DNA of 63,122 bases, filler included, from Reticulomyxa filosa (GCA_000512085.1; 10 parts of 10 records of this genome joined end to end with filler, not necessarily neighbours in it); one strand, 5' to 3'; positions 28,078 through 46,418 are shown, numbered from the whole stretch's first letter. Numbers and translations: made by a program. The notes: generated from the letters alone by a model not told the origin.

Positions 28078-28151
28078 TTTTTTTTTTTTTTGCAAGAAAA
28101 AGGAAAGGTATAAAGGATGGAAGGTTGCACTATCTATTAACAAACAAAATA

Positions 28152-30284
28152 GAAAGAAAGCCAGCTAAAAAAGCTGAAGGCGGAAAAAGAACATTTAAAC
28201 CAAAGCCGAAGCGGTAAAGACAAAGGAAATGGGCCAGAGGACGAATTGCAAGAAACTTTGGGTGGTGCAGGTGTAGAAGATTATGAAATTGAGCAGATGA
28301 AGCTCAAAGCAGAAGAAAGTTTGATGGATCCCAATACACTCCTTGGTAAATTTGAACCTTTAGTCCTGAGAGTGATTAGTCAACGTGAAAAATTTAATGT
28401 ACTGTTTTTGTTTGTTTTTTTTCTTCCTCCCTCTCATCCTTGTCTTCTGTGCGGAAAAAATTGAAACATGAGACAGAAATTTTGTGAACAGTGTCCTATT
28501 TTACAATCTGCAGCAGTTCTGGCGTTTGCCAAATTTATGTGCGTGTCATCAACAATGTGGTATGTTTGTCAAACAAACAAAAAAAAAGCTTGGATATGCT
28601 TTGTTTGATTTTGACACTGTTGCTATGGTGATGATGTTTAGTGAAAGAAATCTCCAAGTCTTATTCACGCTGCTCGAAAGACATACAAATCCCAACATTC
28701 GTGCCAACATCATCATTGCTTTGGGTGACATGTTAAGTAATGCTTAAGTCAATAGTAAAGCGTAAACAAAGGAAACTGGGTCAGTATGTAATAATTTGTA
28801 ATTGTTTAAACTCTAGGGCATTTCGCTTTCCAAACGAATTGGATGCCTGGTCTCCAAGAATGTACAAGAATCTGAGAGACAGTAATGTTGTCGTCAGAAA
28901 AAATGCGTTGATGGTTTTGACGCATTTGATCTTAAATGACATGGTCAAAGTTAGAGATAGCATCAGCGAGATTGCATTGTTGCTTTTGGACGAATTGCCT
29001 GAGATTAGCGACCAGGTTTGCGTTTTTTTCACTTTTCGACAAACAATCTTTAACGTTTTTTTGCTGATGGATCATAGGCACGTTTGTTTTTCCAAGAATT
29101 AGCGAAAAAAGGTAAAAATCCAATATATAATGTAATTCCAGACACGATCAGCCGATTGTCAAACAATGAAAATGTCAGTGACGAAACATTCCAATATGTG
29201 ATGAAGTTTTTGCTCGCGTTCATTGAAAAAGACAAACAAAAAGAGAATTTATTGGAAAAATTGTGCAATCGATTTACCGCGGCAGGCGACGATATGCGAA
29301 GTTGGAGAAATATTGCTTATTGTTTGTCGCAGTTACAATACTCAGAGAAATTAGCTCGCAGCATTGTTGATGAAGAATTGACCAAAAAATATGAAGATAA
29401 ACTGGGCGATGAGATTGTGTTTCAACATTTTAAGGATATTCAAAATAAATGTCGAAAGCACATCAAACCAGTTGAGAAAACAATTCTCTTTGTTGGTTTG
29501 TTTTGTTTTTTTTTTCTCCAGCAAAAGTAGATGTTTGTGGTTTTAAACGAAAACAAGGAATTCAAGGAAACGTTCGAAGCATGGATCAATCATTTGCAAG
29601 CAATTCATGACAAACAATCAGAAAATGCTGCGGCTATTGATCGCGGAGACTCCAAATTACAACACAATCGAAAGCATCCAAAGAAGACGGAAGAAGATGA
29701 GGAGAACAATGGGCATGACATTGTAGAGAATGATCCAAAAGAAAACCAAGAAACGACAGCAGTTTTGAATAAGCTAGAGTCATATCTTAGACCAAATTTA
29801 ACATCACGTACATAAAAAACTAATTAACAGAAAAAGGGCAGAAGGACCAAAAATAGGGAATCAATCAAAGGCCAAGAAGAAAATAGAGGTCGTGGTGTTA
29901 AGAATCATGGTCGTGGCCGAGGTCGTGGACGTGGCCGTGGGCGGACATTAGTCAGAAGAAATGTTGAAAGCGATAGTGATTTGGAAATTGAGGCGGAGTC
30001 GAGTGAGGAAGAAAAAAAAATTACTGATGATCAAACAGATTCTGAGAAAGAAAACGACAAGGAAAACACAAATACGCGAAATAATGCTTCAAAGGATATC
30101 GAGGAAGAAAGAGAAAGCAGTGAAAATGAAGCAGCTGCGGTCGAGACAGAAACTAAACAAGTTAAGAGAAAATATAATACAAATTAGTGAATATCACAAA
30201 TACTGTAAATTGCAAAAATATCAATAGAGCGAAGAAAAATCGAGGGCGGGCAGGCGTCGACTTGTAAGACGACACAATCGTTAA
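28152..30284 (+). CDS. NCAPD2: Condensin I non-SMC subunit 1 (CND1/Ycs4/CAP-D2), 3' part, multi-exon
   Basis: LQSAAVLAFAKFMCVS, RANIIIALGDM-AFRFPN, LRD...VRKNALMVLTHLILNDMVKV, PIYNVIPDTISRLS, KDKQKENLLEKLCNRF; acidic and RG-rich tail. Confidence 0.92.
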
Positions 30285-30820
30285 TACAAATTTAAATTAC
30301 AATTTACTGAACAGGGAAATGTAAAGAAATTGAAAAAGGTTGGTATTGGTCATTGTTAAACTATAATCGACAAAAACTTCTTATTTAGATTTGTCCAATT
30401 ATTTATTTTGATTTTTTTTTATGAAATCGTACCAACGTTTCATCATTCCTTCTTCTTCTTAGAAACACTTCTTTTGGTCCAGACAAACTTCTCTCAGCTG
30501 TTTAATTGCATGCAAAGAAAAAAATGGCTCTCGAGATGATCAAAGATTTAAGTCAAATGATGCAAATTTTAGATCCAGGAATCGTTGTGTTTATGAACAT
30601 GTTTTCATGAAATATTAACAACAAGTTTCTAAATACAAAATAACAGAGCTATGATCGTTGATATTTTTGTGACGTTTTCCAAAGTTGGATTGTGTACAAA
30701 AAATCAGGAAAATCATCAAAAGAAAACAATTTCTGTCAAGCTGCGAAAACAGGTTTTCCCCGCATAAGTTTTCTTTAATTCAAGAGAATTCGAAATAAGA
30801 AAAGTTGTACTGACAATACA

Positions 30821-33800
30821 ATGATTGAAAGAGTATTTGTTTCGAACGCGAACCGTATTGAAATCAATGATTGGCTTTATGTTGATAACAAGTGCATAAA
30901 ATGTTTGGGAGGAATGCAAAACAGACCAAAATCAACAAAATATGAGCTGGAAATGAAGGCGTTAAGGAGGTTATGCGGTAATGTAATTGAAGAAGATGAA
31001 TTGCGAAAACAGCTCGAAGAAAGTAATGGTAATGTATCTGTGGTGATTGGGCGAGTGGTCGCTAAATTAATGAATCCACAAGTAATTTATCCATAAAATT
31101 TAAACTACAACTTGTGCAATAATCAATGTTATTACAAAACAAAACAGATCGAAAGTTGTGATCCAGATTTTGTCAATAAAGTCAACCAATCAGAAAATGA
31201 ACATATCATGTTATAGCCGCATAATCAATCTTTCATTTATTTTGTCACACGTTGCGTTTGTTTTTATATGTGTAGCCAGGCGGGAGATACGCAAGAATCG
31301 CAGGTAAGTGAACTAGTTGAACAAAAATTAGACAAATTGAAAAAAGAAGAGGAAAAAATCGAAATTGGAGAGACAAAGCCAGGGATTAATCTGCAAGGCC
31401 ACTGTAGAAACATGGATTGTTTGGCAGCAAAAGCAAAACTTCCTGTGTGGATAAATCTTGAATTTGGTAGTGTTACATTTGTCTCTGATAACACAGCTTA
31501 TAATTGTCCAGATTGTAAGCAATCAACAGTAACATCGATTATCAAAGTAATGATATTTAATTCCGAACATTCTATTTGTGCGAGTGATGATACGATACCC
31601 GTGAAAGACAACCATTATCAATGCACTTATCCAATTAAATCAGGATTATCCTATGACTTGAAAGCCAATAAAATTAGACAGCACGCAACAAGTTTAGAAG
31701 ATTTAATTACTCGAAGTGAAATTGCCATGACAAGCGTTGAGATTGTGAATTTGGTTGCAGAGTTGCAAAATTATTTAATTACCGTGGTAAAACCATCCAA
31801 AGTAAAAGATAAGGTAAGATTATTGGAAAAAAATCCAATGTGATTATGGTGGGGATTACAATCAGGCGTTTGATGTTGGAAGATTCACCATTTTATGTGA
31901 TAATGCAACCAAATTGCAAACAGCAGTGGCGGTGATGAAGAAAGCAGAGAAATTTAATTTGATTGTATCTGAAGATAAAGACTTCTTTGAAAGGCAATCC
32001 AAGACACATCACAGATTTCACAATATTAAATTATATGTTCCGAAACATGATGTATATGTGGAGATGCAAGCGACTTTAAAAAATTTTACAACACTAGAAG
32101 GATATACTGTGATTGAAAATCCAAAATTAAGCCATTTGTTTTATGAACACATCAGAGCATGGAAGCCAAATGGTCCAGAAGAGGAAGAACTTAAACAGGA
32201 AGGCGATAAAACATTAGCTAGAATTAATGATGTTATTTGTGAATGGATTGATGACAAAGGAATACAAAAAATAACATACCACTACAAATCTCATTTAGAT
32301 ATTGGAATATTAAAGCCACCACAACTATGCAAAAAAAGTGAATCAGAAATTAATGCTAATACTTCACTAAGGATAGCACAATTTGTATATGAACAACTTT
32401 GCAAATTCACTCCAACAAAATTAAAAGGGAAAGCAATATATGTGATTTTATATGAATATTATAAAAAATATATTATTGGAAACAAAAGCCCGGCAAGTTG
32501 TGCGGATTTCCTTTCATTATTACAAGAAGCAAGAAAATTGGAAATGGAAGAAGATCCAGCAATATCCCAAGCACTTGAAATGTATATTCCACTACAAGCA
32601 AATAGTTATCCGCATATGGACAGTGATGATAATCAAAATAATCAAACTTATGATTGTCATCAAAATGTACTTGAATTCCTGGGAGCAGAAGAAAAAGAAG
32701 AGAAAAGTGAACAACACCAGAAAAGAAAAGTAATGATAATTCAAGGAAAATCAGGATCAGGAAAAAGTATATTCTGTCGCCACTTAGAAGAAACGCTATG
32801 GGATAATTATAAGCTTAATTCAAAAAGTCCTATTCCAGTTTATATTTCATTTCCAAAAGTTTATAACAAACACCACGAAAAAGATATTATTTTACAAGCA
32901 TTACAAGGTAAAAATATTAACAAAGAAATTATGGATGCCATTCGTGAAAAAATATCTTTTGTGTTTATTATGGATGGATTTGATGAAATATTTGATTTTT
33001 ATCGCAAAAATGAAAATGAACAATATTTCTGTGACCGTTTTAATTTACATGAATGGAATGCAAAAATTATTGTCACTTGCCGAAGTAGTGTATTACATGA
33101 CGATGATATTAAAAGTACTTTGATTGGCGCAAATCAAAATGATACAACAATGATGTATTTATGGCCATTTACGAAACAACAAATGCATAATTACATTGAA
33201 AAATTTGCAAATATGAAATTTAAAAATAACAATAATGTAGGTAACACGAATGATTGGACGACACAACAATATGAAGAAACGCTAAATAATTATCCAAATC
33301 TACATAAAATGATAGAAGAACCATTTCTCCTTCAATTGATTTTGAATGTGTTGCCATCATTAATACAACAATATGGTGCAGGAAGCAACATTTCAAAGGT
33401 GCAAATATATGAGGTGTTCAATGACCAATGGATTGATATTCATAGTCAAAATGTTATCTCAAATTTATCAGAATTACGTATTCAAATGAATATAAACAAA
33501 ATCAAAGCAGCGCTAAAACAATATTGCCTTGATTTAGGATTTGATATGTTTCATCAAGGAGATCAAGTGACAATTGAACCAGGATTTCGATATCAAAACG
33601 ATGACACAATTTTGAGTAAATTAGATCCAAAAATGGAAAATGAAAGCAAAGGTATTGTGGATGAAGTAACAAAAGTAAAAACAATGGATGAAAATTCAGG
33701 TGTAAAGAATATTTGGGAGAAGTATTTCCATGGCGATAGTATTGCTAAATATGTATTGAGAAGAGTTGGCGAAAACAAATATCAGTTTTTACACAAATCT

Positions 33801-36468
33801 TGCCAAGAGTATTATGCTGCACAAAAGATCATATTTGATATCATTTCATGGAAACCTAGTATTGTTGATGTTGATAATATTAATAATCAACAATTTCAGC
33901 AACAATTTGAAATACATATTCAAAAACTATCCATCAATTACAAAATATTAAATGAAGAATTAGGAATTATTCAATTCATTGCAGAGCGGGTTCATGAAAG
34001 CAATCCGATATATGTGAATTTAAAATCGCGATTGTTTCGGATCATTGAATCGTCAAAGAATAATGCAAATGTCAGCATCGCAGCAGCAAATGCAGCTACC
34101 ATACTCAATTCAGCAAATGTCAATATGCATTATCGAGATTGGAGCAGTATCAAAATTCCTAATGCTATTTTGGATCACTCTTTTCTTGAAGGAACTGACT
34201 TTAGTAATTGCTAATTTAGATAATGTTCACTTCTATCAGGCTTTTTTGAATAAGGCTATTTTCACAAATGCATCAATGAATGGAATTTATTTTGGAGAGT
34301 ATGCCTATTTGGAAGGGCATTCAAATATTGTAAATGGAATTCAATTTTCACCAGATGGAACAAAAATTGCGTCATGTTCAGATGATTCAACTATTCGGAT
34401 ATGGGATACATCAACAGGAAAACAACTTCATTTATTGGAAGGGCACTCAGGTTATGTAAAAGCAACACAGTTTTCTCCTGATGGTTCTATGATTGTTTCC
34501 TGTTCACAAGATAAAACAATTCGACTATGGGATGTGTTATCCGGCCAACAAATCCAAGTGTGGGAAGGTCACTCAGGTGTTGTAAACGCGGCTCAATTTT
34601 CCTCTGATGGTTCTAAAATTGTGTCATGTTCACAAGATAATACGGTTAGAATATGGGATATATCATCCAGAAAACAAATTCAATTATTGAAAGAGCATTC
34701 TGATTGGGTTAATGCAGTACAATTCTCATCTGACGATTCAAAGATTGTATCTTGTTCAAATGATAAAACAGTTAGACTGTGGGATACTTCGTCCGGAAAG
34801 CAGCTTCAAATTCTAGAAGGACATGCAGACGATGTAATTGGAATTCAATTTTTATCCAATGGATCAAAGATTTTATCATACTCGAAAGACACAACCATTC
34901 GAATATGGGACTTATCTTCATACCAGCAAATTCAAAAATTGGAAGGACACTTAGAAGTTGTAAATGGTGTTCAAATATCACCAGATGAAACAAAAATCTT
35001 GTCATATTCAAATGATACAACAGTTCGAATATGGGATTTGTTGTCCGGAAAACAACTTCAAATTTTGGAAGGACATTCAAGATGGGTAAATTCAGCACGA
35101 TTTTCACCGGATGGTTCCAGAATTGTATCGGGCTCATTAGATGAAACAATTCGAATATGGGACGTGTCATCTGGAAAACAACTTCAAGTATTAGAAGGCC
35201 ATTTACATTGGATAAATGGAGTGGATTTTTTCCCAAAAGAACCCAAAATTTTGTCATGTTCATATGATAAAACTATTCGAATATGGGACGTAGCTTTAGA
35301 AAGAAAGATTCAGTTAACAGAAGGACATCTAGACAATGTAATGCAGGCCAATTTTTCACCAGATGGCTCCAAAATTGTATCTTGCTCATGGGATAAAACA
35401 ATTCGATTGTGGGATACATTATCAGGAAAACAAATTCGTGCCTTTGAAGATAATATAAAACATGTACGTGGAACACAATTTTCACCAGATGCCTCCAAAA
35501 TTGCATCATACTTTCGTGAAAAAATAATTCGCATATGGGATGTATCATCTGGAAAACTGGTTCAATTATTGGAAGGACATTCAGATGTAATAAACTCAAT
35601 ACAATTCTCACCAGATGGTGACAAACTTGTATCATGCTCAGATGATGCAACTATTCGAATATGGGATTTGTCATTAGGGAAGCAAATGCAATTGCTGAAC
35701 GGGCATTCTTCTCGAGTATTAGAGATTCAATTTTCGTCAGATGGCTCCAAACTTGCATCTCGTTCTCGTGATAAATCAATCCGATTATGGAATGCGTTTT
35801 CTGGAAAACAACTGCACTCCTTTGAAGGGCATACAAAAGATATAACAAGCATGCAGTTTTCTCCAGACGGCTCTAAAATTGTATCAGGTTCAGAAGATAA
35901 TACTATTCGAGTGTGGGATTTATTGTCTGAAAAACAACTCCTATTATTGAAAGGTCACTTACACAGTGTAAGAGATGTTAAGTTTTCACCAAATGGTGCC
36001 GCGATTGTATCATGTTCAAACGATAAAACGATTAGATTGTGGAACACATTTTCTGGAAAACCAGTCCATGTGTTAGAAGGGCATCAAGATCATGTATGGG
36101 GGGCACAATTTTCTCCTGATGGCTCTAAAATTATCTCTTATTCCTGGGACAAAACTATCCGAATATGGGATACATCTTCCGGACGGCAAATCCAAGTGTT
36201 GGAAGGACATACTGGAAGCATATTTGGAATGCAACTATCACCGGACGGTACAAAGATAGTATCATGCTCAGAGGATAGGACAATTCGATTATGGGGCAGT
36301 GACTACAGCAAAACATTTGGCAAAGCCGAGGCTAGTTTGGTGAGGTGTATTTGGCAAGTAGGTGTTCAAAGGTTTGGATTATCAATGAAAGATAGTTCCT
36401 GGAAGCATACAAACGGTTTGACACAACAGCAAAAATTGCTTGTTGAACAACGAGGTGGAAAATTTTGA
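30821..36468 (+). CDS. NLR-like STAND protein: UBA-like, Cys4 zinc module, RelA/SpoT-like nucleotidyltransferase, NACHT NTPase, pentapeptide repeats, 16 WD40 repeats; two +1 indels (31827-31833, 34208-34209)
   Basis: Walker A IIQGKSGSGKS, Walker B FVFIMDGFDEI, IIVTCRS, PFLL, FLHKSCQEYYAA, AAANAATILN, 42-aa WD repeats. N-terminal K.KVK...R..EK / D..R / EMQ / H..YE motifs. ORFs 31268-31843, 31914-34214 and 34045-36468 join when one base is removed at each site. Confidence 0.88.
34310..36295 (+). repeat. Tandem array of 16 126-bp (42-aa) WD40 coding repeats
   Basis: Periodic GAAGG.CA....TT.TC.CC.GATGG..ATTCGAATATGGGA units; 16 counted in the translation. Confidence 0.9.
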
Positions 36469-37404
36469 TTTTTAGTATTTGTTACAAATAGGATTTGTTT
36501 ACTCTGTTTAATACAATTGCAACTTGATTCTTCTGAGCATAATTGTTGATTTTCAATTTTGTAACATAATCTCAAAATTTTATTGTTTTTTTAAACAAAA
36601 CGTTTATTACTTTACTATGCAATGAGTACACTTCTGTGCAAAATTTGAATGATGTTATACAAGAATAAAACAGGAAAGAAAGTATGTAAAAATAAGAGAA
36701 AGCAATAATTTGCAAAAATGATAGCGTTCCATAAAAGAAAATTAAATTGCAACAAGATTTAAAAATTGATCTTCAAAGTTACCAAAACATAACTTTGTAA
36801 GTACAATAATGCAAAAAAAAAAGCTAATCCCAGGATTTATCAAAAAAGATGCAACGCTGAGAAAGAATTGAAAACGTTGCTTTCACGGAAAAAAATGATT
36901 ATTTCCATAGTAATATTTTACTTTTTTCGTCCAGTTGTGAAATAACATTGGATATTTCACGAGCTATTGATGTAATTGCTATATCTTCTTAGGATAAGCT
37001 ATTTGACTGTGGAGCTGTTATGTATAGATTTCATCATAACAGAACCCAAGCTGAGATCAAATCAACTACATAAATTTTTACAAATAAGAAAAAAAAAGAA
37101 GAGGAATAAGGAGACATTTGTGCAGATGAAGAGAACACAAAGAATATTCTAATTATCGATGAATAAAGACTGTTATATTTTATTTGAAACTGACACGTAA
37201 TCTTTTCTTGAATCCTAAAATTTGTTAAATCTTAGCTGTTGCACATAACTCGTTTTTTAAGAAAAATGCGTAAATAAAAGGTTTTTTTGCAGTTACAAGC
37301 AAATTAAACAAAATAAATTTGAATAGGGAACTGTTGGAAGTTCAAAGTTTATTTTTGAATAGACATTGTAATCATTAGAAATAATTCAAGAAAAACGCTT
37401 TGGA

Positions 37405-38626
37405 ATGAATCTCAACGCAAACACTGATACTGTCTCTTTTCATCGAGACAACCATGTAGGGATGAATATTGAAAAAGAGAACACAACACGAGAGTTGGTA
37501 AGTTTTGTAATTTCACTATATCGTGCTATGAAAGCGAAATTATTTCACCGAACGAATAACAAAAATAGTCCGAAAATGAAGTAAAATTAATAATTCAAAG
37601 TTGGATCCGGATTTCAAATATCAAATCAGGGTGGATCCATGATTTTGACAAAATTGTTATTAAATACGTTGAGTCATAGTTTATTTCTGTTCAGTTTGAC
37701 TGGAGATATTTATTTGTATAAGTAATCAATTTTCGACACAGGTCAAATATTTTAAATTATTGAAAATTTTACAAGGGCATGATAAGGGTGTAAACAGTGT
37801 AAGATTTTCATCAGATTGTCGTAAAATTGTCTCGTCATCAGATGATGAAACAATTCGAATCTGGGATATTGTGTCAGGAAAACAAATTCAACATTTTAAA
37901 GGGCATTACCATTGGATCTTTGTTGCAGAATTTTCTCCAGATGGACAAACCATTGTATCATGCTCAATGGACAAAACAATTCGATTGTGGGATGTAACAT
38001 CAGGAAAAGAAATGAGAAAATTAGAAGGGCATAGAAATCAAATATGGGATGTGAATTTTTCTCCAAATGGTGCAAATATTGTGTCCGGTTCATCAGAAAG
38101 AACAATCCGATTTTGGGATGTGGATTCAGGAAAAGAGATGCAAGTACTAGTAGGACATTCAGGTGGTGTAATGAATGTACAGTTTTCTCCAGATGGTCAA
38201 AAACTAGTATCGTCATCTATTGATAATACAATCATCCTATGGAATGTAAAATCTGGTGAAAAACTGAAAGAGTTGGTCGGACATTCCAGTACAGTAATTC
38301 GCGCAAAATTTTCACCAGATGGTCAATTTGTTGTATCATGCTCAAGTGATAAAACAATCCGAATATGGAATATAGAATCAGGAAAAGAAGTGAAAAAATT
38401 AGAAGGACATTCAGGTAGTGTCAATGATGTAAAATATTTTCCAGATAGTCAAACTATTGTGTCATGTTCAGCTGATAAGACAATTCGTTTGTGGGATGTG
38501 AAATCTGGAAATGAAATACAGAAATTAGAAGGGCATTCTGATTGGATGACAGGAATTGATGTTTCACCCGATGGTAATACAATTGGGTCAGGCTCACGGG
38601 ATTGTACAATCCGAATTTGGGGATAA
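37405..38626 (+). CDS. Seven-repeat WD40 protein (FSPDG-type repeats) with the N-terminal W.R/GW..DF exon module; 3 exons
   Basis: Exon 2 37569-37667 SENEVKLIIQSWIRISNIKSGWIHDFDKIVIKY; exon 3 from 37742 with seven GH...FSPDG..IVS.S.D.TIR.W repeats ending IWG*. Confidence 0.9.
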
Positions 38627-39662
38627 TAATACAAGTAAATAGAAAGCTGCTGTAAAAAAAAAAATTCCATTAATTATGCATTCCTTAAAACAAAGTAAAA
38701 GAAGTTATAATTGCAACGATCATTATTTTTTGTTATTACTTTGAGCTATTGCCTTGAAGTCTAGCATATGAAAAATACCGCAACAACCAACCCAAAGTTT
38801 TCCAATGTTCCTTTTTTTAATTGTAACAACAAGCGCATAATTAAGAACGATGCATAGATATTGAAAGTTAAAATTTGTGCAGAAAAACAGTCTATTTTCA
38901 TTTTTCGACTGGATCAAGCAATATCAGGACATATCGATAAAAAATCTTATAGTATTTTTTAATAATTTCTCAACAAAAATTTACACTATAAAATCAATGG
39001 ATCAAAGAACTACAGTAGTGTCAGATATAATAGCAGATTCAAGTGGAATGTAATTCTACAAAACTTGATGTTAACAACGTTCAAATACATTTTATAACTC
39101 TCAATAACGCATTTACCAATGTGACAGTACCAAAGTTGTTGAAATGTAATAATAATGTCAAAATCATTCTTATTGACACACTTTATTCATAAAACTCGAA
39201 ATGCAACACTTGGAGTGTGCCATATGTTGATAATTCTTCCATATTGTGCTACAATATCTATTTATCTTTTAATTAAATTCTACAAGAATTCAGTTGTACG
39301 GCCGATTTTATTTATAATTTTATTTTAAATTATATTTTGACAACTTCTTTATTCATGTTTTAAAATTTTTGTCAAACCCAGATTTTGGAGAATATTGATA
39401 GTCTTAAAGCTTCGTTTTTCATTTAGAAAATTGAAATATTTAAAGCGTCTATTTTGGGAAATATTATAAAATTTGCATCCTTCTCTGAGAAAATATGCCC
39501 ACGCAAGGCTAACAAGAGATAAGGCCTGACAATCAATATAATCAAATACACAAATCAAACAAATCAAACTACAAAAAAAAAAAACAAATCAAATTCAAGT
39601 TCCAAAATCAACATTGCTTGGACTTGAAAGATATCAAATATTTTCCCTGATTTCTTTTCTAC

Positions 39663-41455
39663 CTAAATAAATGAAGCCTTCTCCATTTCTCGTTTAATCA
39701 ATGCAAGGTTTACATTTGCAATGACTGATTGCATCATTCCTGTGTCTAAAGAGCAAGTCAAGTGAAAAAACAGTCCTCTTTTTCGATGCCAAGTTTCAGG
39801 ACAATCTTTGTACCAAATCGCCTCAAATCGAGTCTCGATATACTTTAGGACTTTGTCTTTATCATGTTTTGATGAGTCATCAAATGATTTGTCGTAAATT
39901 GTGAAAGGTACACTTTTTATTTTTTCTTCGAACAGATCCATCTATTCAAATCAAGCAAGCAAACAAAGAAATTCTCTCTTGATTCAAGACAAGACCTTTT
40001 TTCTTCTTCTTCATCCTCAAGAGTGAAACTAAACTTTATTTAAAAACACAAAAAAGTCAGTAGCTTGAAACACAGAATTTTGAGCAATTTGTCGAAAGAC
40101 ATCGAACGTTTCATTATAACAATTGATAGAGCCGTCTTCAAAAGTGTTTTGATCGTATCCGTTCAAGGACATAATATAAATGATCACGTCAATGCCATGA
40201 AACACATTCACCCATTTTTTACGTTCGCTTTTTTGTCCACCAACATCGATTAACCGAAACGTCCATTTTTTATTTTGGATTACTTTTGATATATTACAAG
40301 CAGACACTCCTGTGTACCAAAAGCAAATCCAAATCAAACTGTAATAAAAGTATGTACTTTTTTTTTTTTTTTTGCAAGGGGATTTATTTTTTTTTTCCCC
40401 AAATATACAGTGTCTCCCTTTTTTTTTTTTTTTGTTCCGTCCTCCCTCTTTCTCTTCTCCTCATTCGAATGCATCCCTCTGTATGATAAAACATGTCACG
40501 TGAGTGTAAATGTGACCAGTAGTTTGCTCTCGAATCCTTAAGTAGTCGTCCCATGACGGGGTGTATCGAATGTCCTTTGGGTTGATTTTTGTGGAGCCCT
40601 CGTCTCCATCGAAATATAGCTTTTGAATTTGATCTAAAAAGTATTTCGTGTTGTCCATGATAAACTGGTGTTGGAGACGCTTAAATGTGTTCTGAATACC
40701 ACGACAAGCCCAGATCTTTTCGATTCGTTCTGCCATCGTCTTTCGGATAATCACTTGGTGGAAAAATATCGATTCGTCGCTCGCAATTGAATCCACCCAT
40801 TTACGACATCGCTCATCCTCGATCTCAAAGTCTGCATTTTTGTTGCGCTCTTTTGCATTAAAGCTGCACAATGTTACACTAGTTGTTCCCCCTCGCAATA
40901 GTACACACACATAATTTTTTTTTTTATATACTTTTATATACAATGTATATACATATATATGTATGTAAATTGTTTGACAGTATACGTCACAAAGTTAAAA
41001 AAAGTTTTGTTTTGTTTTTTTATTTGTTTGTTTTGTTTCTCTTGCATGTCGTAGCAGATCATCTTGTGAATCGATTCCAGACATTGAGTCGAATCAAATG
41101 GCTCTTTTGCTTCTCTTTCATTGTCGTTCATATTTATCATCTGTTTTGCTACTGTCGTTTTTCCGCTTCCTTTTTTATGGTTCATTTTTATTGTTTTATT
41201 TTTTGTTTTTTTAATTTTCTTTTTTTTTTTTGAACAATAATCAAAAAAGGAATGACCTCCTGGTCCAAGCATCAATACGTGAATTATGCTTTTTGCAAGT
41301 ATTTTTTCTTCTTGGAATTTGATGTCAATTTCAGAAGACACTTCCTCAGCTTTTTTTTTTTCCTTCTCCTCGTTTTGCTCAGCGGACGTCGCATTTGTCT
41401 CTCTTTCCTCACTCATTAAACTTGAGCGCTTTGAAAACCATCTCAATAATTGCAT
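39663..41455 (-). CDS. Heterotrimeric G-protein alpha subunit, divergent, multi-exon
   Basis: G1 VLMLGPG-GSGKTT (across an intron), G2 LRIREQTTG, G3 DVGGQKSERKKW, G4 FLNK-D, G5 TCSLDT. Confidence 0.92.
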
Positions 41456-42816
41456 TTTTTGTCTGTTGCTATTAAACAACTGGAGAGGGTGGATCTCTCA
41501 ATTTTTTAAATGTAAAACGTGTCCCAACTATTTTGTTCTTGTCCTAGACGTTTTACAGGATTATAAAAGTATTATGACATCCCTATCACAAAAGCGTGTC
41601 ATATAATGTACTATTGTAAATAGAAGCTTTACACGCTGTCATTTCAGAAATTAATAAAGACAATATCTGCTTACTAAGCTATATTTTAAATCCGATAAAT
41701 GATATTTTAGTGCAAACTATAAGTAATGGCACTATTAAATAACAAACTATTGGTGAAAAAATAATTTTAAAAAAAACAAATCCAATACAAAAAAGATGAA
41801 AGTCATATACTAATTTTTAAAAAAATCATAAGTCCGATAAACTGTAAATGCAATGTATACAGATTTATTTAGTAATGTGGGACGTCTGCTGATAGTATTG
41901 GTACACTAACTGTAATACGAGAGATGTTTACTAAGAAGAGAATAGGGGTTTCGTAAAACGAAAGTAATTTAAGTAATAAAACAAGATAACGAAAGAAAAG
42001 TAAAGAAAAGCAAGAAAGTAAGAAGTAGTTTGTTGAGGAAGTTTAACCTACTGGGGATTCCTCAGCTCCCTTGGCGTTCAGGTACTCATAATATGGACTT
42101 GCCCTACAGTGAGAACCAACACTTTTTTTATTTTGTTAATTTTTCTTCTGATTAGCTTCAGATTGGAACAGTTCGATGCTCACTAAAAAACAAGCGTTAA
42201 AATACAATTACGTTATTCAAATAGCAATTTTACTAATTCAACTAGATGATGCTTTTTTTCATTACAATTTTTTAAAAGTTACTTATTACAATTATGATTG
42301 CTGTTTTTAAGTTTGTGATTTGGTGACATTGCGATTGTTTATAGCTGCTGGAGCTTTGCTATTTTTAGCTTTGAAGAAGTGGGCTCAAAATGGAAAGCTA
42401 CAAGGAAAAGCAAACACAAGTCAATTTGAATCACCCAAGTGTAAGCGAACCAAGCACGGATGCGGAGCAAAATTTACGAATAAGAAATTGTCTGTAAGAT
42501 CGACAATTTTGATTGAAGCAATTTCAACAATGTTTGCATGAACATAATCAATAAATGCATTGAAGTCTTTCTCACAAAAAAGTGACATTAAAAAAGATTT
42601 ACAGTAAATTTATTTTTCGTAAAAGTTAAAAACCAAATGTATTAACTTTAATTTGTTATTTGAAAATGTATGATGAAAAGTTTTTCAAAGGTCAAGCACA
42701 AACTATTTTACAAAACAATAAACTGAAAAGACGAACAACTAAAAAATTAGGAGATCCCACCTTATTTTTTGTTGATTGTGGAACTAATTCCTTGGCATTA
42801 TTCCTTATTTGAAATT

Positions 42817-44272
42817 ATGTCTAGTACTAGTTATGCATATCAACAAGGACATGGAAAGTATCCAATTTACTATCGTTCTGTTGCACAGAGGCCCACATCT
42901 CGTACAAGCTCTGCCGTTGAAAGTGGGGTTAATTACGACAGCGAAGTGATCATGGATGAAGAAGCTCTCTACACCAAAACAGTGTATCAAAAAGTTGTAA
43001 CTGATCATTACAACAAAGAGAGCTCTCGTCGTGTATTTTCAACATTTGAGTTTTGTAAAAAGAAAAGTAGAGTGAGGAGCAAGGAAAGAAAAAGAAAATA
43101 GAGGTAGCAATTAGAAAAAAATAATTATTTTGGACTTTAATAAAGTGAATATACGCACAAATAAAAAAAAAGTGAAGAATTAAATGCCAACAAAGATCAG
43201 AAGAAGCAAAAAAATAAATTATGGCGAATAAGCATGGGCGGAATAGTGATGTTGTTGTCAGTATGGGTATGGTGGAACTACGGACAATACTTAACATTCA
43301 AATCTTTACGAACACATCATCAATACATCAATGATTATGTGATGCAACACCCACATACCACTCCCTTACTCTATATTGTGACCGTGATTGTTGTAGTTGG
43401 ATTGACTTTGCCTGGTTAATTTTTTTGTTGTTATTCCTCTTTCTTCTTCTAATAAATGTTTTGTATGCAATTATGTATTATGCACACAAATTTTTTTTTT
43501 ATGTGATAATAATGCACAAATCTTAAAAAAAAAAATGACTGTGTATGCATGTGTGCATGCGTGCACTTGTTTGTAATGGACAAACATTTTACCCAGGGGC
43601 TACCGTGTTAAGCATGGCCGCAGGATTGATATTTAGACAGCCTTGGGCAAGTGTTTACGCGTGGCTCGGTTGTGGCATTGGAGCTTGTATTTGTTATGGC
43701 CTAGTCAAAAGTATTTTCGCTGATTGTCTAAAAAGCAAAGTCTCGAAATATTCAAACTGGTTCCGAAGGTAAAAACTAACAAGCCTTATATATATATACC
43801 TATATGTTTGTGACAATTATTTACATCGTTATTAACCACATAAAAAAGTTTTGAAGAAGGGCTTCGCGCAAATGAGCTATTGTATTTAATTTATGCTCGG
43901 TATATGATAATAATCCCATTCTGGTGTGTGAATGTTGCGGCAGCATTGTTGGAAGTGCGAACTGACTATTTTGTGATATCGACATTGATTGCAACCATTC
44001 CAGGCTCTTTGTTGTACACAACAGCTGGGCGTGGTTTGGCAAATGCATTTGAGCTTTATAGGGACGACATTAGCACATGGACACTGTGGAAACAGGTTTT
44101 ATTTACCAATGAAATCAGGTTTTGTTTACTTTTACTTTTGATTTGTGGACTGTTTCCAATGGGTATTCGATATTACAATAATAAATATCGCAACAACCTT
44201 TCATATACTAATACCATTTCGGGAGGAAAAAAGGAGTTTGACTATTTAATATTTTTGGCCTATTGTTTCTAA
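42817..44272 (+). CDS. TVP38/TMEM64/TMEM41 (DedA/VTT, SNARE-associated Golgi) membrane protein, multi-exon
   Basis: GLTLPG-ATVLSMAAGLIF, GIGACICY, ARYMIIIPFWCVNVAAALL, TLIATIPGSLLYTTAG. Confidence 0.88.
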
Positions 44273-44779
44273 CTTACTAAAATCTGGTTTCTGCTACATT
44301 TTTCCAGCCTTCATTAAATTGTGTTTTAGAGTGCTAAAAATTTATCAATTTATTTAGCTATGGACGAAAATGCTGATAAATTATAATAAATCAAATCTTT
44401 TAACAAACAGTTTCAAAAATTTTAAAAAATGAAAAAGAAATGTTAAATGAGGTTAATTGTTACAAATCTTGTAATAAATCAAAAAATGTTATGCTGAGAT
44501 TTTAATATTGCATCAAATTTCAAAGCTGCGCATTAAATTTGTTTTGCGCTTACTGTTTTACAATTATGACAAAAGTAGATCTACTTTGTAACACATATTT
44601 ATGTTTTCTAATTTCAAAAATGAAATAGTTTAAAATTTTATTATTTTACACTTAGTTATGCAAGGAAAAAGAATCAACAGTTGCATATCATTTCAGGATA
44701 AATGTCAATTATTCAAAATGTTCGTAGATTTTTCGCAGTTTTTCCTATTATTTTCCATCAAACAAAGATGAAATTTAAA

Positions 44780-45908
44780 AAAAAAAGAGATGAACATTCC
44801 AGTTTGATTCTTGGTTTTCATGTCCGCAGTTACTTTTTTTTTAAGCATTTGGTGACATTCAATCATTGACTCAATTCACCAAATAAAGCATTCATGTTTC
44901 CATCTTTTGGTTGCTCTTTTTGTTCTTCCGCGCCGCTCAAATCTCCTCCCTTTTTTTTTTAAAAAAAGGGGGATAATTTTTTTTTTTTTTCAAAAAAATG
45001 AAATAAAATTTCAAAATATCAAAACTTTAGGATTCCATGTTAATCCCGTTTAAAAGTGCTCCTTAATGAATTCGATTTGTGCCTTACAAATTTTTTTCAA
45101 GGCTTGCACAAATGCCTTTGTCTTGTCGTCCTTGACTTCCTTCAACACGCGATTCAAGTTGAAGTCGCACGCTTGCGTCTGCTGGTCACAATGACCCAAA
45201 GGAGACTCACTTGGAGGAGTTATCACCACCCATTGTGTTAAGGTGAGCACTTCGTAGCACGCCTTATAATGGTCACCCCCACTTTATTTATTTTTATTTT
45301 TATTTAAAAAATTTATTTATGAAATTGGAAATATCGGGAAAATTTAACTTTTTTGAGGTCCTTACCACGATAACGAGCGTTATCTGCTTTGGCAATTGCA
45401 TCACTTGCGCGACCTAAAAATGCAACGAGATCTTTCTATTTTTTTGTTATTTCGTTTGTAGTTTGTATACGAATTTTTTTATGTTCTTCTTCTCCCCTTC
45501 CCTCCCTTTCTTCAAAATAAACAAATACATAAAAAAATAAAGATTGAACTTGCTCTGGCTTTTTTGCATTGGGGAGTTTTTGGACGAGTTCCAAAACGTT
45601 GTCAAATCCTTGCTTGATAAGCGCATCCATGTCAAGAACTCCTATAAATCATCGCAAGCTTTTGCTGCTGCTGCTGCAACATCCGTTTGCACAAATTTCG
45701 TGTATTCGGACACATAAGGAGGTGTGCCACTTGCCTCATCGTCTCCTCCACCACCACCGCCTAATTTACGCGTGGCGTTTTCAAGTCTTGTCACAGCCTA
45801 GGTTTTTTTTTGTTAATTCTTAATATTATTAGCTTGGGTGAATGACACACCAAAGCAAACACAAATCTATTTAACTGCTTCCAATCGAGATACAAGTGCT
45901 TTGGTCAT
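44780..45908 (-). pseudogene. CAP: Cyclase-associated protein (CAP/Srv2) N-terminal half, disrupted and truncated after the WH2 region
   Basis: MTKALVSRLE-AVTRLE motifs; helical domain ending EHF*TGLTWNPK (TAA at 45050-45052); WH2-like NALFGELSQ*LNVTKCLKK/VTADMKTKN with TGA at 44863-44865 and an A-run frameshift. No CARP domain seen downstream. Confidence 0.75.
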
Positions 45909-46418
45909 ATCTAATCTAAATGAATTTTTGATCTAGAACAAAAGACTAGCAACAAACATTTACACAATTTAATTTGCTGTTGGGAGTGTAAAATCTGAAT
46001 TCTTTTTCATTTTAGTTATTTGGCCAACAATAAAGCAAAATTAAGCAAAATTAAGCGAAGAAACGCATTGTTGTGCAAGCACGACTTATTTTTAAAAATA
46101 AGTTTATTGTCAAATAAGATTTGTTCTTTTCTCAAAGAACTGATTATAGAATTTTCCTATTCTTCGTGATGATCACGAATCCGATTTTGGAAAACATGAC
46201 GATAGTGAAGAATTTTTTTGGCTTTCTTGGCGATTGACTAATTTTTTTTTCTAAAATCTAATTATTATTTGACATTTCGTTTGTTGCTTTGTTATTGTGT
46301 GCTTGGATGTTATTATTAAAAACTCTTTATTTTTTTGTTGTTTCTATTAATAACGAGTACTCTTTTCTTAGAAGACGAAAGAAGATGATAATTGAATCTT
46401 CAGACAAAAAGTAATTGA

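Follow-up and report, generated by a model that had tools for sequence, protein, structure and literature searches.

A gene of the foraminiferan Reticulomyxa filosa probably encodes a sensor of the STAND class (signal transduction ATPases with numerous domains) that carries a RelA/SpoT-type synthetase (SYNTH) domain as its effector and that, when triggered, would pyrophosphorylate an acceptor and thereby arrest or kill the cell, in defence or in fusion incompatibility. This reading draws on sequence, on structure models and on analogy with characterized systems. The gene lies within the window (the whole stretch of DNA that was analysed, 63,122 nucleotides with filler, joined from ten parts of the R. 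filosa genome), of which 28078-46418 is contig ASPP01008975.1 (18,341 bp). Its predicted product is a NOD-like receptor (NLR)/STAND protein in which a Cys4 domain, SYNTH, a linker, NACHT, pentapeptide repeats and 16 WD40 repeats follow one another:

31268..36468, + strand, complete NLR-like gene, lying in three collinear open frames, about 1732 codons once both breaks are bridged
31382..31678, + strand, all-beta Cys4 domain, C-x5-C ... C-P-x-C (AlphaFold2 predicted local distance difference test score (pLDDT) 91, predicted template-modelling score (pTM) 0.82)
31670..32246, + strand, RelA/SpoT-type SYNTH domain, Tas1-like, split by frameshift 1 (Pfam, profile, fold and motifs)
32247..32729, + strand, SYNTH-NACHT linker, about 160 residues, conserved in paralogs, without Pfam match, its first residues modelled as helix
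32730..33206, + strand, NACHT NTPase (PF05729, 37.2 bits, E 3.3e-9; gathering score 26.7)
32745-32768, + strand, Walker A GKSGSGKS, within NACHT
32958-32987, + strand, Walker B FVFIMDGFDE (hhhhDGFDE), within NACHT
33207..34181, + strand, post-NACHT region typical of STAND proteins, conserved in paralogs, without Pfam domain
34182..34290, + strand, short pentapeptide-repeat segment spanning frameshift 2 (PF00805, 21.5 bits in the window, 27.6 bits in P0054)
34282..36300, + strand, 16 WD40 repeats (PF00400, E 8.7e-181, 15 stretches)

Most of SYNTH and NACHT lies within one open frame of the window (31836-34214), and both domains are contained entirely in a single open reading frame (ORF) in the paralogs P0001, P0022 and P0033; in the paralog L004, SYNTH, NACHT and the first WD40 repeats share an open frame of 1252 codons. 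Fusion of the effector to NACHT, as proposed in an earlier note on this DNA, thus holds at the level of ORFs in the window and in several paralogs. The NACHT frame and the WD40 array are collinear; in the assembly, they are set apart by a shift of 1 base at 34208-34209. The array keeps an exact 42-residue period (126 nt according to TRF, the Tandem Repeats Finder), and repeat analysis localizes its variability at repeat positions 14-16, 18 and 34.

By sequence profile and by structure model, the region preceding NACHT is a divergent RelA/SpoT homolog (RSH) synthetase domain that resembles Tas1. Searches were run on the separate pieces of the window gene or on intact paralogs, and the module that was modelled, the window copy being broken, is residues 498-702 of P0001, the closest intact paralog, 84% identical to the window over the aligned segment. 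Two unbroken paralogs exceed the 27-bit gathering score of PF04607 (P0001 at 30.2 and P0022 at 27.9 bits; P0033 and P0010 reach 26.4 and 21.0 bits), and 44 of 50 family copies match at E<=0.01 (best E 9e-7), with no other family recurring. On these scores, the family is at the edge of the PF04607 model. A family profile searched against all PDB sequences yields a sole match, Tas1 (6OX6), at E 3.8e-4 when built from 7 sequences and 1.1e-4 when built from 50. The alignment covers K-x-P-x-K..R...EKI..DY.GD....D..R.TI and, separately, H-x-x-YE..R, and Tas1 would, by this search, be the nearest of the RSH subfamilies to SYNTH. PADLOC and NCBIfam applied to 50 domain copies gave only scattered chance matches.

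The structure model of the P0001 module (pLDDT 83.9, pTM 0.75) points the same way. Foldseek against the PDB gives 36 matches at E<1e-3, every one an RSH synthetase; Tas1 leads (E 1.1e-7, TM 0.62/0.65), and RelP, SaEAS, RelQ, Rel and CapRel follow. VIA Z-scores are 13.4 for Tas1 (172 aligned residues, root-mean-square deviation 3.0), 12.5 for RelQ and 11.5 for CapRel (170 aligned residues), the RSH range of 11-13.4 comparing with at most 8.4 for other pol-beta nucleotidyltransferases (e.g., Cid1). The earlier note, which had read a RelA/SpoT domain out of the order of its motifs, is borne out by profile and fold alike. Since Tas1, RelQ and CapRel fall within ~2 Z units of one another, the fold does not, however, assign the acceptor. 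Alignment of the family profile with a protein of Bordetella phage PHB04 by hhalign (95% probability, E 3.4e-8) brings the catalytic D, the G-loop and E-x-Q into register. A viral library returned phage RelA/SpoT and "Tas1" proteins as well as a Fadolivirus relA/spot protein, and a shape search of the ESM Atlas returned RelA_SpoT clusters; the corresponding feature search was uninformative, with all scores <0.9. The best ESM Atlas shape match is an unnamed Nucleocytoviricota cluster of 59 proteins (TM 0.74, 184 residues); going by these models, giant viruses may carry the same divergent type of synthetase.

The SYNTH motifs quoted in the earlier note are all found in the window sequence, in order, and its corrected reading and its coordinates hold:

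31784-31831, + strand, basic donor-ATP motif VVKPSKVKDKVRLLEK
31869-31886, + strand, FDVGRF, with D-x-G-R at 31872-31883
32001-32024, + strand, KTHHRFHN, with T-H-H-R as G-loop
32055-32075, + strand, YVEMQAT, with E-M-Q
32130-32156, + strand, SHLFYEHIR, with H-x-x-Y

Conservation of these motifs was counted over 51 near-complete copies aligned to the family hidden Markov model (P0001 numbering). The Mg-binding D571 is kept in all 51 and the catalytic E634 in 48, with Q636 in 47 (most of the others being gaps or fragments), so that both acidic residues that the earlier note had singled out are conserved among paralogs. The basic residues K544, K549, R553 and K557 are kept in 44-50 of the 51 (K549 in 50), G573 and R574 in 49-50 (R574 in 50), H616, R618 and H620 in 47-50, and H658 and Y661 in 48. 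The ratio of nonsynonymous to synonymous substitution rates (dN/dS; Nei-Gojobori, window versus four paralogs) is 0.05-0.09 in SYNTH, as against 0.14-0.23 in the linker, NACHT and post-NACHT regions, and indicates strong purifying selection on SYNTH; because dS, at 0.9-1.5, is near saturation, the ratio speaks for long-term constraint, mostly in older history, and says little of the condition in which this copy is today. Many N-terminal domains of NLRs are adaptors, and SYNTH might likewise be an inert adaptor or oligomerization module. Since every tracked motif residue survives in 44 or more of the 51 copies and SYNTH has the lowest dN/dS of the protein, that idea is scarcely credible, even when it is pooled with the programmed frameshifting that is taken up below.

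The G-loop departs from the canonical form. Its Gly is absent, and at position 617, which corresponds to the base-stacking Tyr, 40 of the 51 copies have His and a minority of 8 have Tyr. Environmental homologs have the same motifs, two of them (P0087 and P0096) with a T-H-Y-R G-loop. In the AlphaFold2 model, T-H-H-R stands at the end of a low-confidence loop joining strands 3 and 4, which is where the G-loop lies in solved structures of toxic small alarmone synthetases (toxSAS; PMC11782079). The earlier note had equated this His-His with the usual Gly-Tyr and had taken the change to signal a different acceptor. The first of these propositions stands, in that hhalign sets THHR on EGYR of the phage protein; the second is less secure, in that two environmental homologs and 8 of 51 paralogs have Tyr for the second His, so that a changed acceptor is not required.

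What is established for STAND proteins and for toxSAS enzymes suffices for proposing a mechanism. [quoted passage not shown] R. filosa grows as a network of reticulopodia, multinucleate and capable of fusion, and it is for that reason that defence against intracellular parasites or viruses, or a fungal-like fusion incompatibility, appears plausible. An immune or non-self role is suggested by the architecture, by the localized variability of the WD40 repeats and by a family size of at least 94 gene models.

The leading candidate for the acceptor, though it falls just short of probable, is an adenine nucleotide, so that (p)ppApp would be made and ATP rapidly depleted. It is the first choice because the nearest relative, Tas1, which is adenine-specific, produces (pp)pApp and depletes the ATP pool (PMC11782079). 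The surroundings of the G-loop are strongly basic (K-T-H-H-R-F-H-N-I-K) and resemble the large positive acceptor patch that nucleotide-making enzymes have, in contrast to FaRel2 (PMC11782079); as an argument for a nucleotide acceptor this likeness is weak. Alternatively, SYNTH might be a pyrophosphokinase of the tRNA 3'-CCA end that stops translation, in the manner of CapRel, FaRel2 and PhRel2. CapRel is a close structural match and is itself a sensor-coupled effector of abortive infection (PMC11782079), and the G-loop lacks the canonical Gly-Tyr. A tRNA acceptor is nevertheless unlikely: Tas1 is the sole PDB relative at the sequence level, DY-x-GD ... D-x-x-R-x-T-I is common to Tas1 and to a phage RelA_SpoT protein encoded two genes from an HD_4 gene, and the basic G-loop stretch is as in alarmone synthetases, unlike FaRel2.

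R. filosa feeds on bacteria, which counts in favour of a third possibility: that SYNTH makes (p)ppGpp, for example against bacterial prey, symbionts or pathogens. Close matches to the SYNTH model include RelQ, RelP and SaEAS, an exported synthetase (Z 11.8-12.5 for the three), and the idea is present in the literature, interference with bacteria through (p)ppGpp having been suggested for fungal RelA_SpoT NLRs by Dyrka et al. (PMC4986451). It is an improbable one here, in that the protein is an intracellular STAND protein (no signal peptide was noticed by eye; a predictor was not used), most copies have His in place of the Tyr that stacks on guanine, and the nearest relative by sequence is adenine-specific (PMC11782079).

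The gene is interrupted twice in the assembly, with a single inserted base each time:

31268-31843, + strand, open frame 1, its first Met the ATG at 31268
31836-34214, + strand, open frame 2, ending at 34212-34214
34045-36468, + strand, open frame 3, in register from 34210 onward
31827..31833, + strand, frameshift 1, a run of A7 that is A6 in paralogs (DNA comparison with paralogs)
34208-34209, + strand, frameshift 2, TT with one T more than paralog L003, within the pentapeptide-repeat linker from NACHT to WD40

Frame 1 ends in ...VRLLEKNPM* and frame 2 begins QCDYGGDYNQAFDVGRF...; the intact paralog P0001 reads ...RLSEKIQCDYNGDYNQVFDVGRF... across this junction. At the DNA level, the window has GAAAAAAATCCAATG and the paralogs have GAAAAAATTCAATG, a difference of +1 base within the A run, which consists of exactly 7 A, one too many, just as the earlier note had it. 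Junction 2 reads AATTGCTAATTTA in the window and AATGCTAATTTG in paralog L003. Alignments of intact paralogs with the three pieces of the window gene are free of gaps over both junctions. A frameshift does, then, split the SYNTH domain as the earlier note had stated, but that note knew of only one, and the second, at 34208-34209, was absent from it.

All five loci that were examined (the window, L001, L003, L004 and L005) carry one or two single-base frameshifts, mostly in runs of at least 4 identical bases (A7, A6, T5, T4), and are otherwise open for 600-1250 codons; the positions of the frameshifts differ among paralogs, which are in frame at both of the window's sites. The R. filosa assembly is a very fragmented draft of 50,809 scaffolds with an N50 of 3.6 kb (PMC13746701). 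On these sequence comparisons, both frameshifts of the window copy are more likely to be errors of the draft assembly than real lesions, and because all five loci carry similar frameshifts in open frames, systematic indel errors are suggested for the draft, along with an undercount of multidomain genes. Programmed frameshifting (ribosomal, or slippage on A7) was considered and rejected. A7 is a known slippery sequence, but the shift sites vary among paralogs, and a +1 shift would be needed where heptanucleotide slippage is typically -1; we hold it to be highly improbable.

Several observations weigh against the proposed reading, and they bear on its different parts. The window copy is interrupted twice in 5.2 kb, and its second break sits in a run of just 2 bases, unlike the usual homopolymer error; these two facts, together with the many pseudogenes that are usual in large, fast-evolving NLR families, favour the view that both insertions are real and that the window copy is a recently dead pseudogene of a family whose other members are functional NLRs. 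This is a serious possibility, if not a probable one. Against it stand the frames themselves, open over 188, 791 and 752 codons and without an in-frame stop apart from the two shifts, the intact motif residues with a SYNTH dN/dS of 0.05, and the comparable frameshifts at every one of the loci examined, as would be expected of an assembly artefact in a draft of this N50. The near-saturation of dS, already noted, limits what the dN/dS can contribute on this point. As to the identity and chemistry of the domain, PF04607 gives the SYNTH piece of the window itself no more than 10.6 bits (E 0.72), the frameshift having removed the first strand and helix; the Gly-Tyr of the G-loop is His-His in this copy; and in structure Tas1 leads RelQ/RelP by no more than ~1 Z unit. 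Finally, we know of no role for (p)ppApp in any eukaryote.

The Cys4 domain, ~100 residues long and with four conserved Cys, directly precedes SYNTH in the foraminiferan proteins and in their environmental relatives; in P0096, ankyrin repeats take its place. It has no Pfam match and no sequence match in the PDB, and structure searches returned a best Foldseek E of 0.17 and a best VIA Z of 5.9, to generic cupin/crystallin-like beta-sandwiches. The domain may bind zinc and regulate the SYNTH enzyme. That it docks onto SYNTH and inhibits it is speculation: a complex prediction for the two domains scored 0.00, was run without controls, and counts neither way.

The family to which the window gene belongs is large. 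At least 94 gene models of R. filosa contain the SYNTH domain, many of them fragments at contig ends; 55 copies span all motifs. In P0001 (RFI_08856; L003 814-3897), the Cys4-SYNTH unit occurs twice in tandem before one NACHT, the tandem modules and NACHT lying in one uninterrupted 1027-codon ORF. Relatives outside R. filosa are few and environmental (P0049, P0058, P0067, P0070, P0072, P0087, P0094 and P0096). Among the environmental relatives are P0096 (L006 2745-6257, an ENA metagenome), a distant 1170-residue protein with ankyrin repeats, SYNTH and NACHT in which the motifs are kept, and L008 786-1919 (Logan SRR7467839; also JGI 3300022690), in which Cys4 and SYNTH lie in consecutive frames with intron-like gaps between them. 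The L008 contig is eukaryote-like and has a RecA-like gene fragment upstream of Cys4/SYNTH. A profile search of a set of 5.8 billion proteins found nothing beyond R. filosa fragments and two environmental proteins, a search with region 330-560 of P0096 found only P0096 itself, pattern scans added no relative from viral, prokaryotic-genome or JGI metagenome contigs, and tblastn against plasmids found no match. Against phage genomes, tblastn found one weak match, in Bordetella phage PHB04 (23.5% identity over 152 amino acids, E 0.2), to the C-terminal half of the 493-residue ATI15652.1, which adjoins the portal gene and scores 30.6 bits on PF04607. At that locus (L011 571-2836), ATI15652.1 is followed by a 69-residue ORF and then, two genes downstream, by an HD_4 gene that carries the annotation (p)ppGpp synthetase/hydrolase, an arrangement reminiscent of a toxSAS paired with its antidote.

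In the public annotation, GenBank splits the gene into RFI_12393 (30536-34214; protein P0002, 99% identical to the window) and a separate WD40 gene of 730 amino acids (34276-36468). RFI_12393 treats 31814-31865 as a 52-nt intron and in this way absorbs frameshift 1; the intron is, on the evidence of the DNA, artificial, and it deletes 17 residues (VRLLEK...DYNQ) from the ATP-binding helix. The earlier note's expectation that automatic annotation would see nothing but a WD40 protein proved wrong, therefore, in that a NACHT protein lacking those 17 residues of its SYNTH domain is annotated next to the WD40 gene; the UniRef label of RFI_12393 is merely "NACHT domain-containing". RFI_12393 also takes in upstream exons (30536-31267), including a UBA-like ...NGNVSVVIGRVVAKL... 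end at 30821-31096; these exons probably belong to another gene. The paralog loci L001, L003, L004 and L005 are each annotated as at least two genes. Split genes and artificial introns in the active site mean that domain surveys undercount the RelA/SpoT NLRs of R. filosa. Downstream, 1.3 kb beyond the gene, lie ~7 WD40 repeats of the same type (37754-38623, in GenBank gene 36649-39192) without NACHT or SYNTH in front of them; they may be an isolated remnant of a further member of the family. On the - strand, convergent with the NLR gene, is a GenBank G-alpha gene (39349-41455; PF00503, 574 residues).

The kind of receptor is already known in fungi; what would be new, as read from the sequences, is its foraminiferan host, the Tas1-like SYNTH, the Cys4 domain, the pentapeptide repeats and the copy number. 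The family would extend enzymatic-effector NLRs to Rhizaria and provide a further case in which a STAND sensor of a eukaryote has put a bacterial toxin/defence domain to new use. Literature searches found no description of NLRs in Rhizaria and no paper in which Reticulomyxa and NACHT appear together, and the papers on fungal NLRs that were consulted (PMC4986451 among them) report no functional test of RelA_SpoT on an NLR, only the Pfam label. With ~55 near-complete copies, a conserved active site and the chemistry of Tas1 known, the function of RelA/SpoT NLRs becomes directly testable. It is doubtful, but worth stating, that an enlarged set of NLRs in a eukaryote should kill or arrest by means of a (p)ppApp synthetase akin to Tas1, draining ATP in a syncytial cytoplasm; on this reading, the toxin domain would probably have been captured from bacteria or phages along with a previously undescribed Cys4 beta-domain, its possible regulator. 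If true, this would be the first role of an adenosine 3'-pyrophosphate 'alarmone' in eukaryotic immunity or allorecognition.

Among known systems, the closest in architecture are the RelA_SpoT-NACHT-WD40 NLRs of fungi, such as Gaeumannomyces graminis (Dyrka et al. 2014, PMC4986451; PMC12258605), in which the earlier note's premise of RelA/SpoT-type effectors on fungal NLRs finds its confirmation (PMC4986451). They are rare there, with RelA_SpoT making up <1% of N-terminal annotations and 17 NLRs in Sordariales (PMC4986451, PMC12258605). Both groups have an N-terminal PF04607 domain, NACHT and WD40 repeats, and in both the WD40 repeats are highly regular with localized variability. The WD repeats of fungal NLRs are highly conserved and positively selected, and the pattern of variability in R. 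filosa is reminiscent of them (PMC4986451). The R. filosa proteins differ in belonging to another eukaryotic supergroup (Rhizaria, Foraminifera), in their extra Cys4 beta-domain and the pentapeptide repeats before WD40, and in numbering at least 94 gene models in one genome; the fungal domain was compared by description only.

For the effector itself, the closest counterpart is Tas1 (6OX6), the (p)ppApp synthetase toxin of the Pseudomonas aeruginosa type VI secretion system. VIA aligns 172 of 194 residues at 19% identity, and the K-x-P-x-K...R...EKI..DY.GD....D..R.TI and H-x-x-YE-x-x-R stretches are common to both. Tas1, however, is a secreted interbacterial toxin that is neutralized by Tis1, whereas in R. 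filosa SYNTH forms one protein with a STAND sensor of a eukaryote, and an immunity partner is not seen for it; its centre, from the G-loop to E-x-Q, is too divergent for alignment by HMMER. The toxSAS enzymes (CapRel, FaRel2, PhRel2, FaRel) have the same fold (CapRel Z 11.5) and, by analogy, might have the same logic: a toxic SYNTH restrained by a fused or partner domain until a trigger releases it, as when CapRel-SJ46 directly senses a phage capsid protein. Their regulator is a pseudo-zinc-finger domain or an antitoxin, as opposed to the NACHT-WD40 STAND module of R. filosa, and their substrates are tRNA or adenine nucleotides. ATI15652.1 of phage PHB04 has the DY-x-GD / D-x-x-R-x-T-I signature, with its EGYR aligning with THHR, but it differs in its canonical Gly-Tyr G-loop, in its portal-gene neighbour and in having no STAND module. 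RelQ/RelP and the long RSHs (Rel, RelA, SpoT), the (p)ppGpp producers of the stringent response in bacteria, have in common with the R. filosa domain the SYNTH fold (Z 11-12.5 for the small alarmone synthetases, ~8-11 for the long RSHs) and the order of the motifs; they are set apart by D-x-x-G-x-R spacing, in place of the D-x-G-R of R. filosa, and by a G-Y G-loop.

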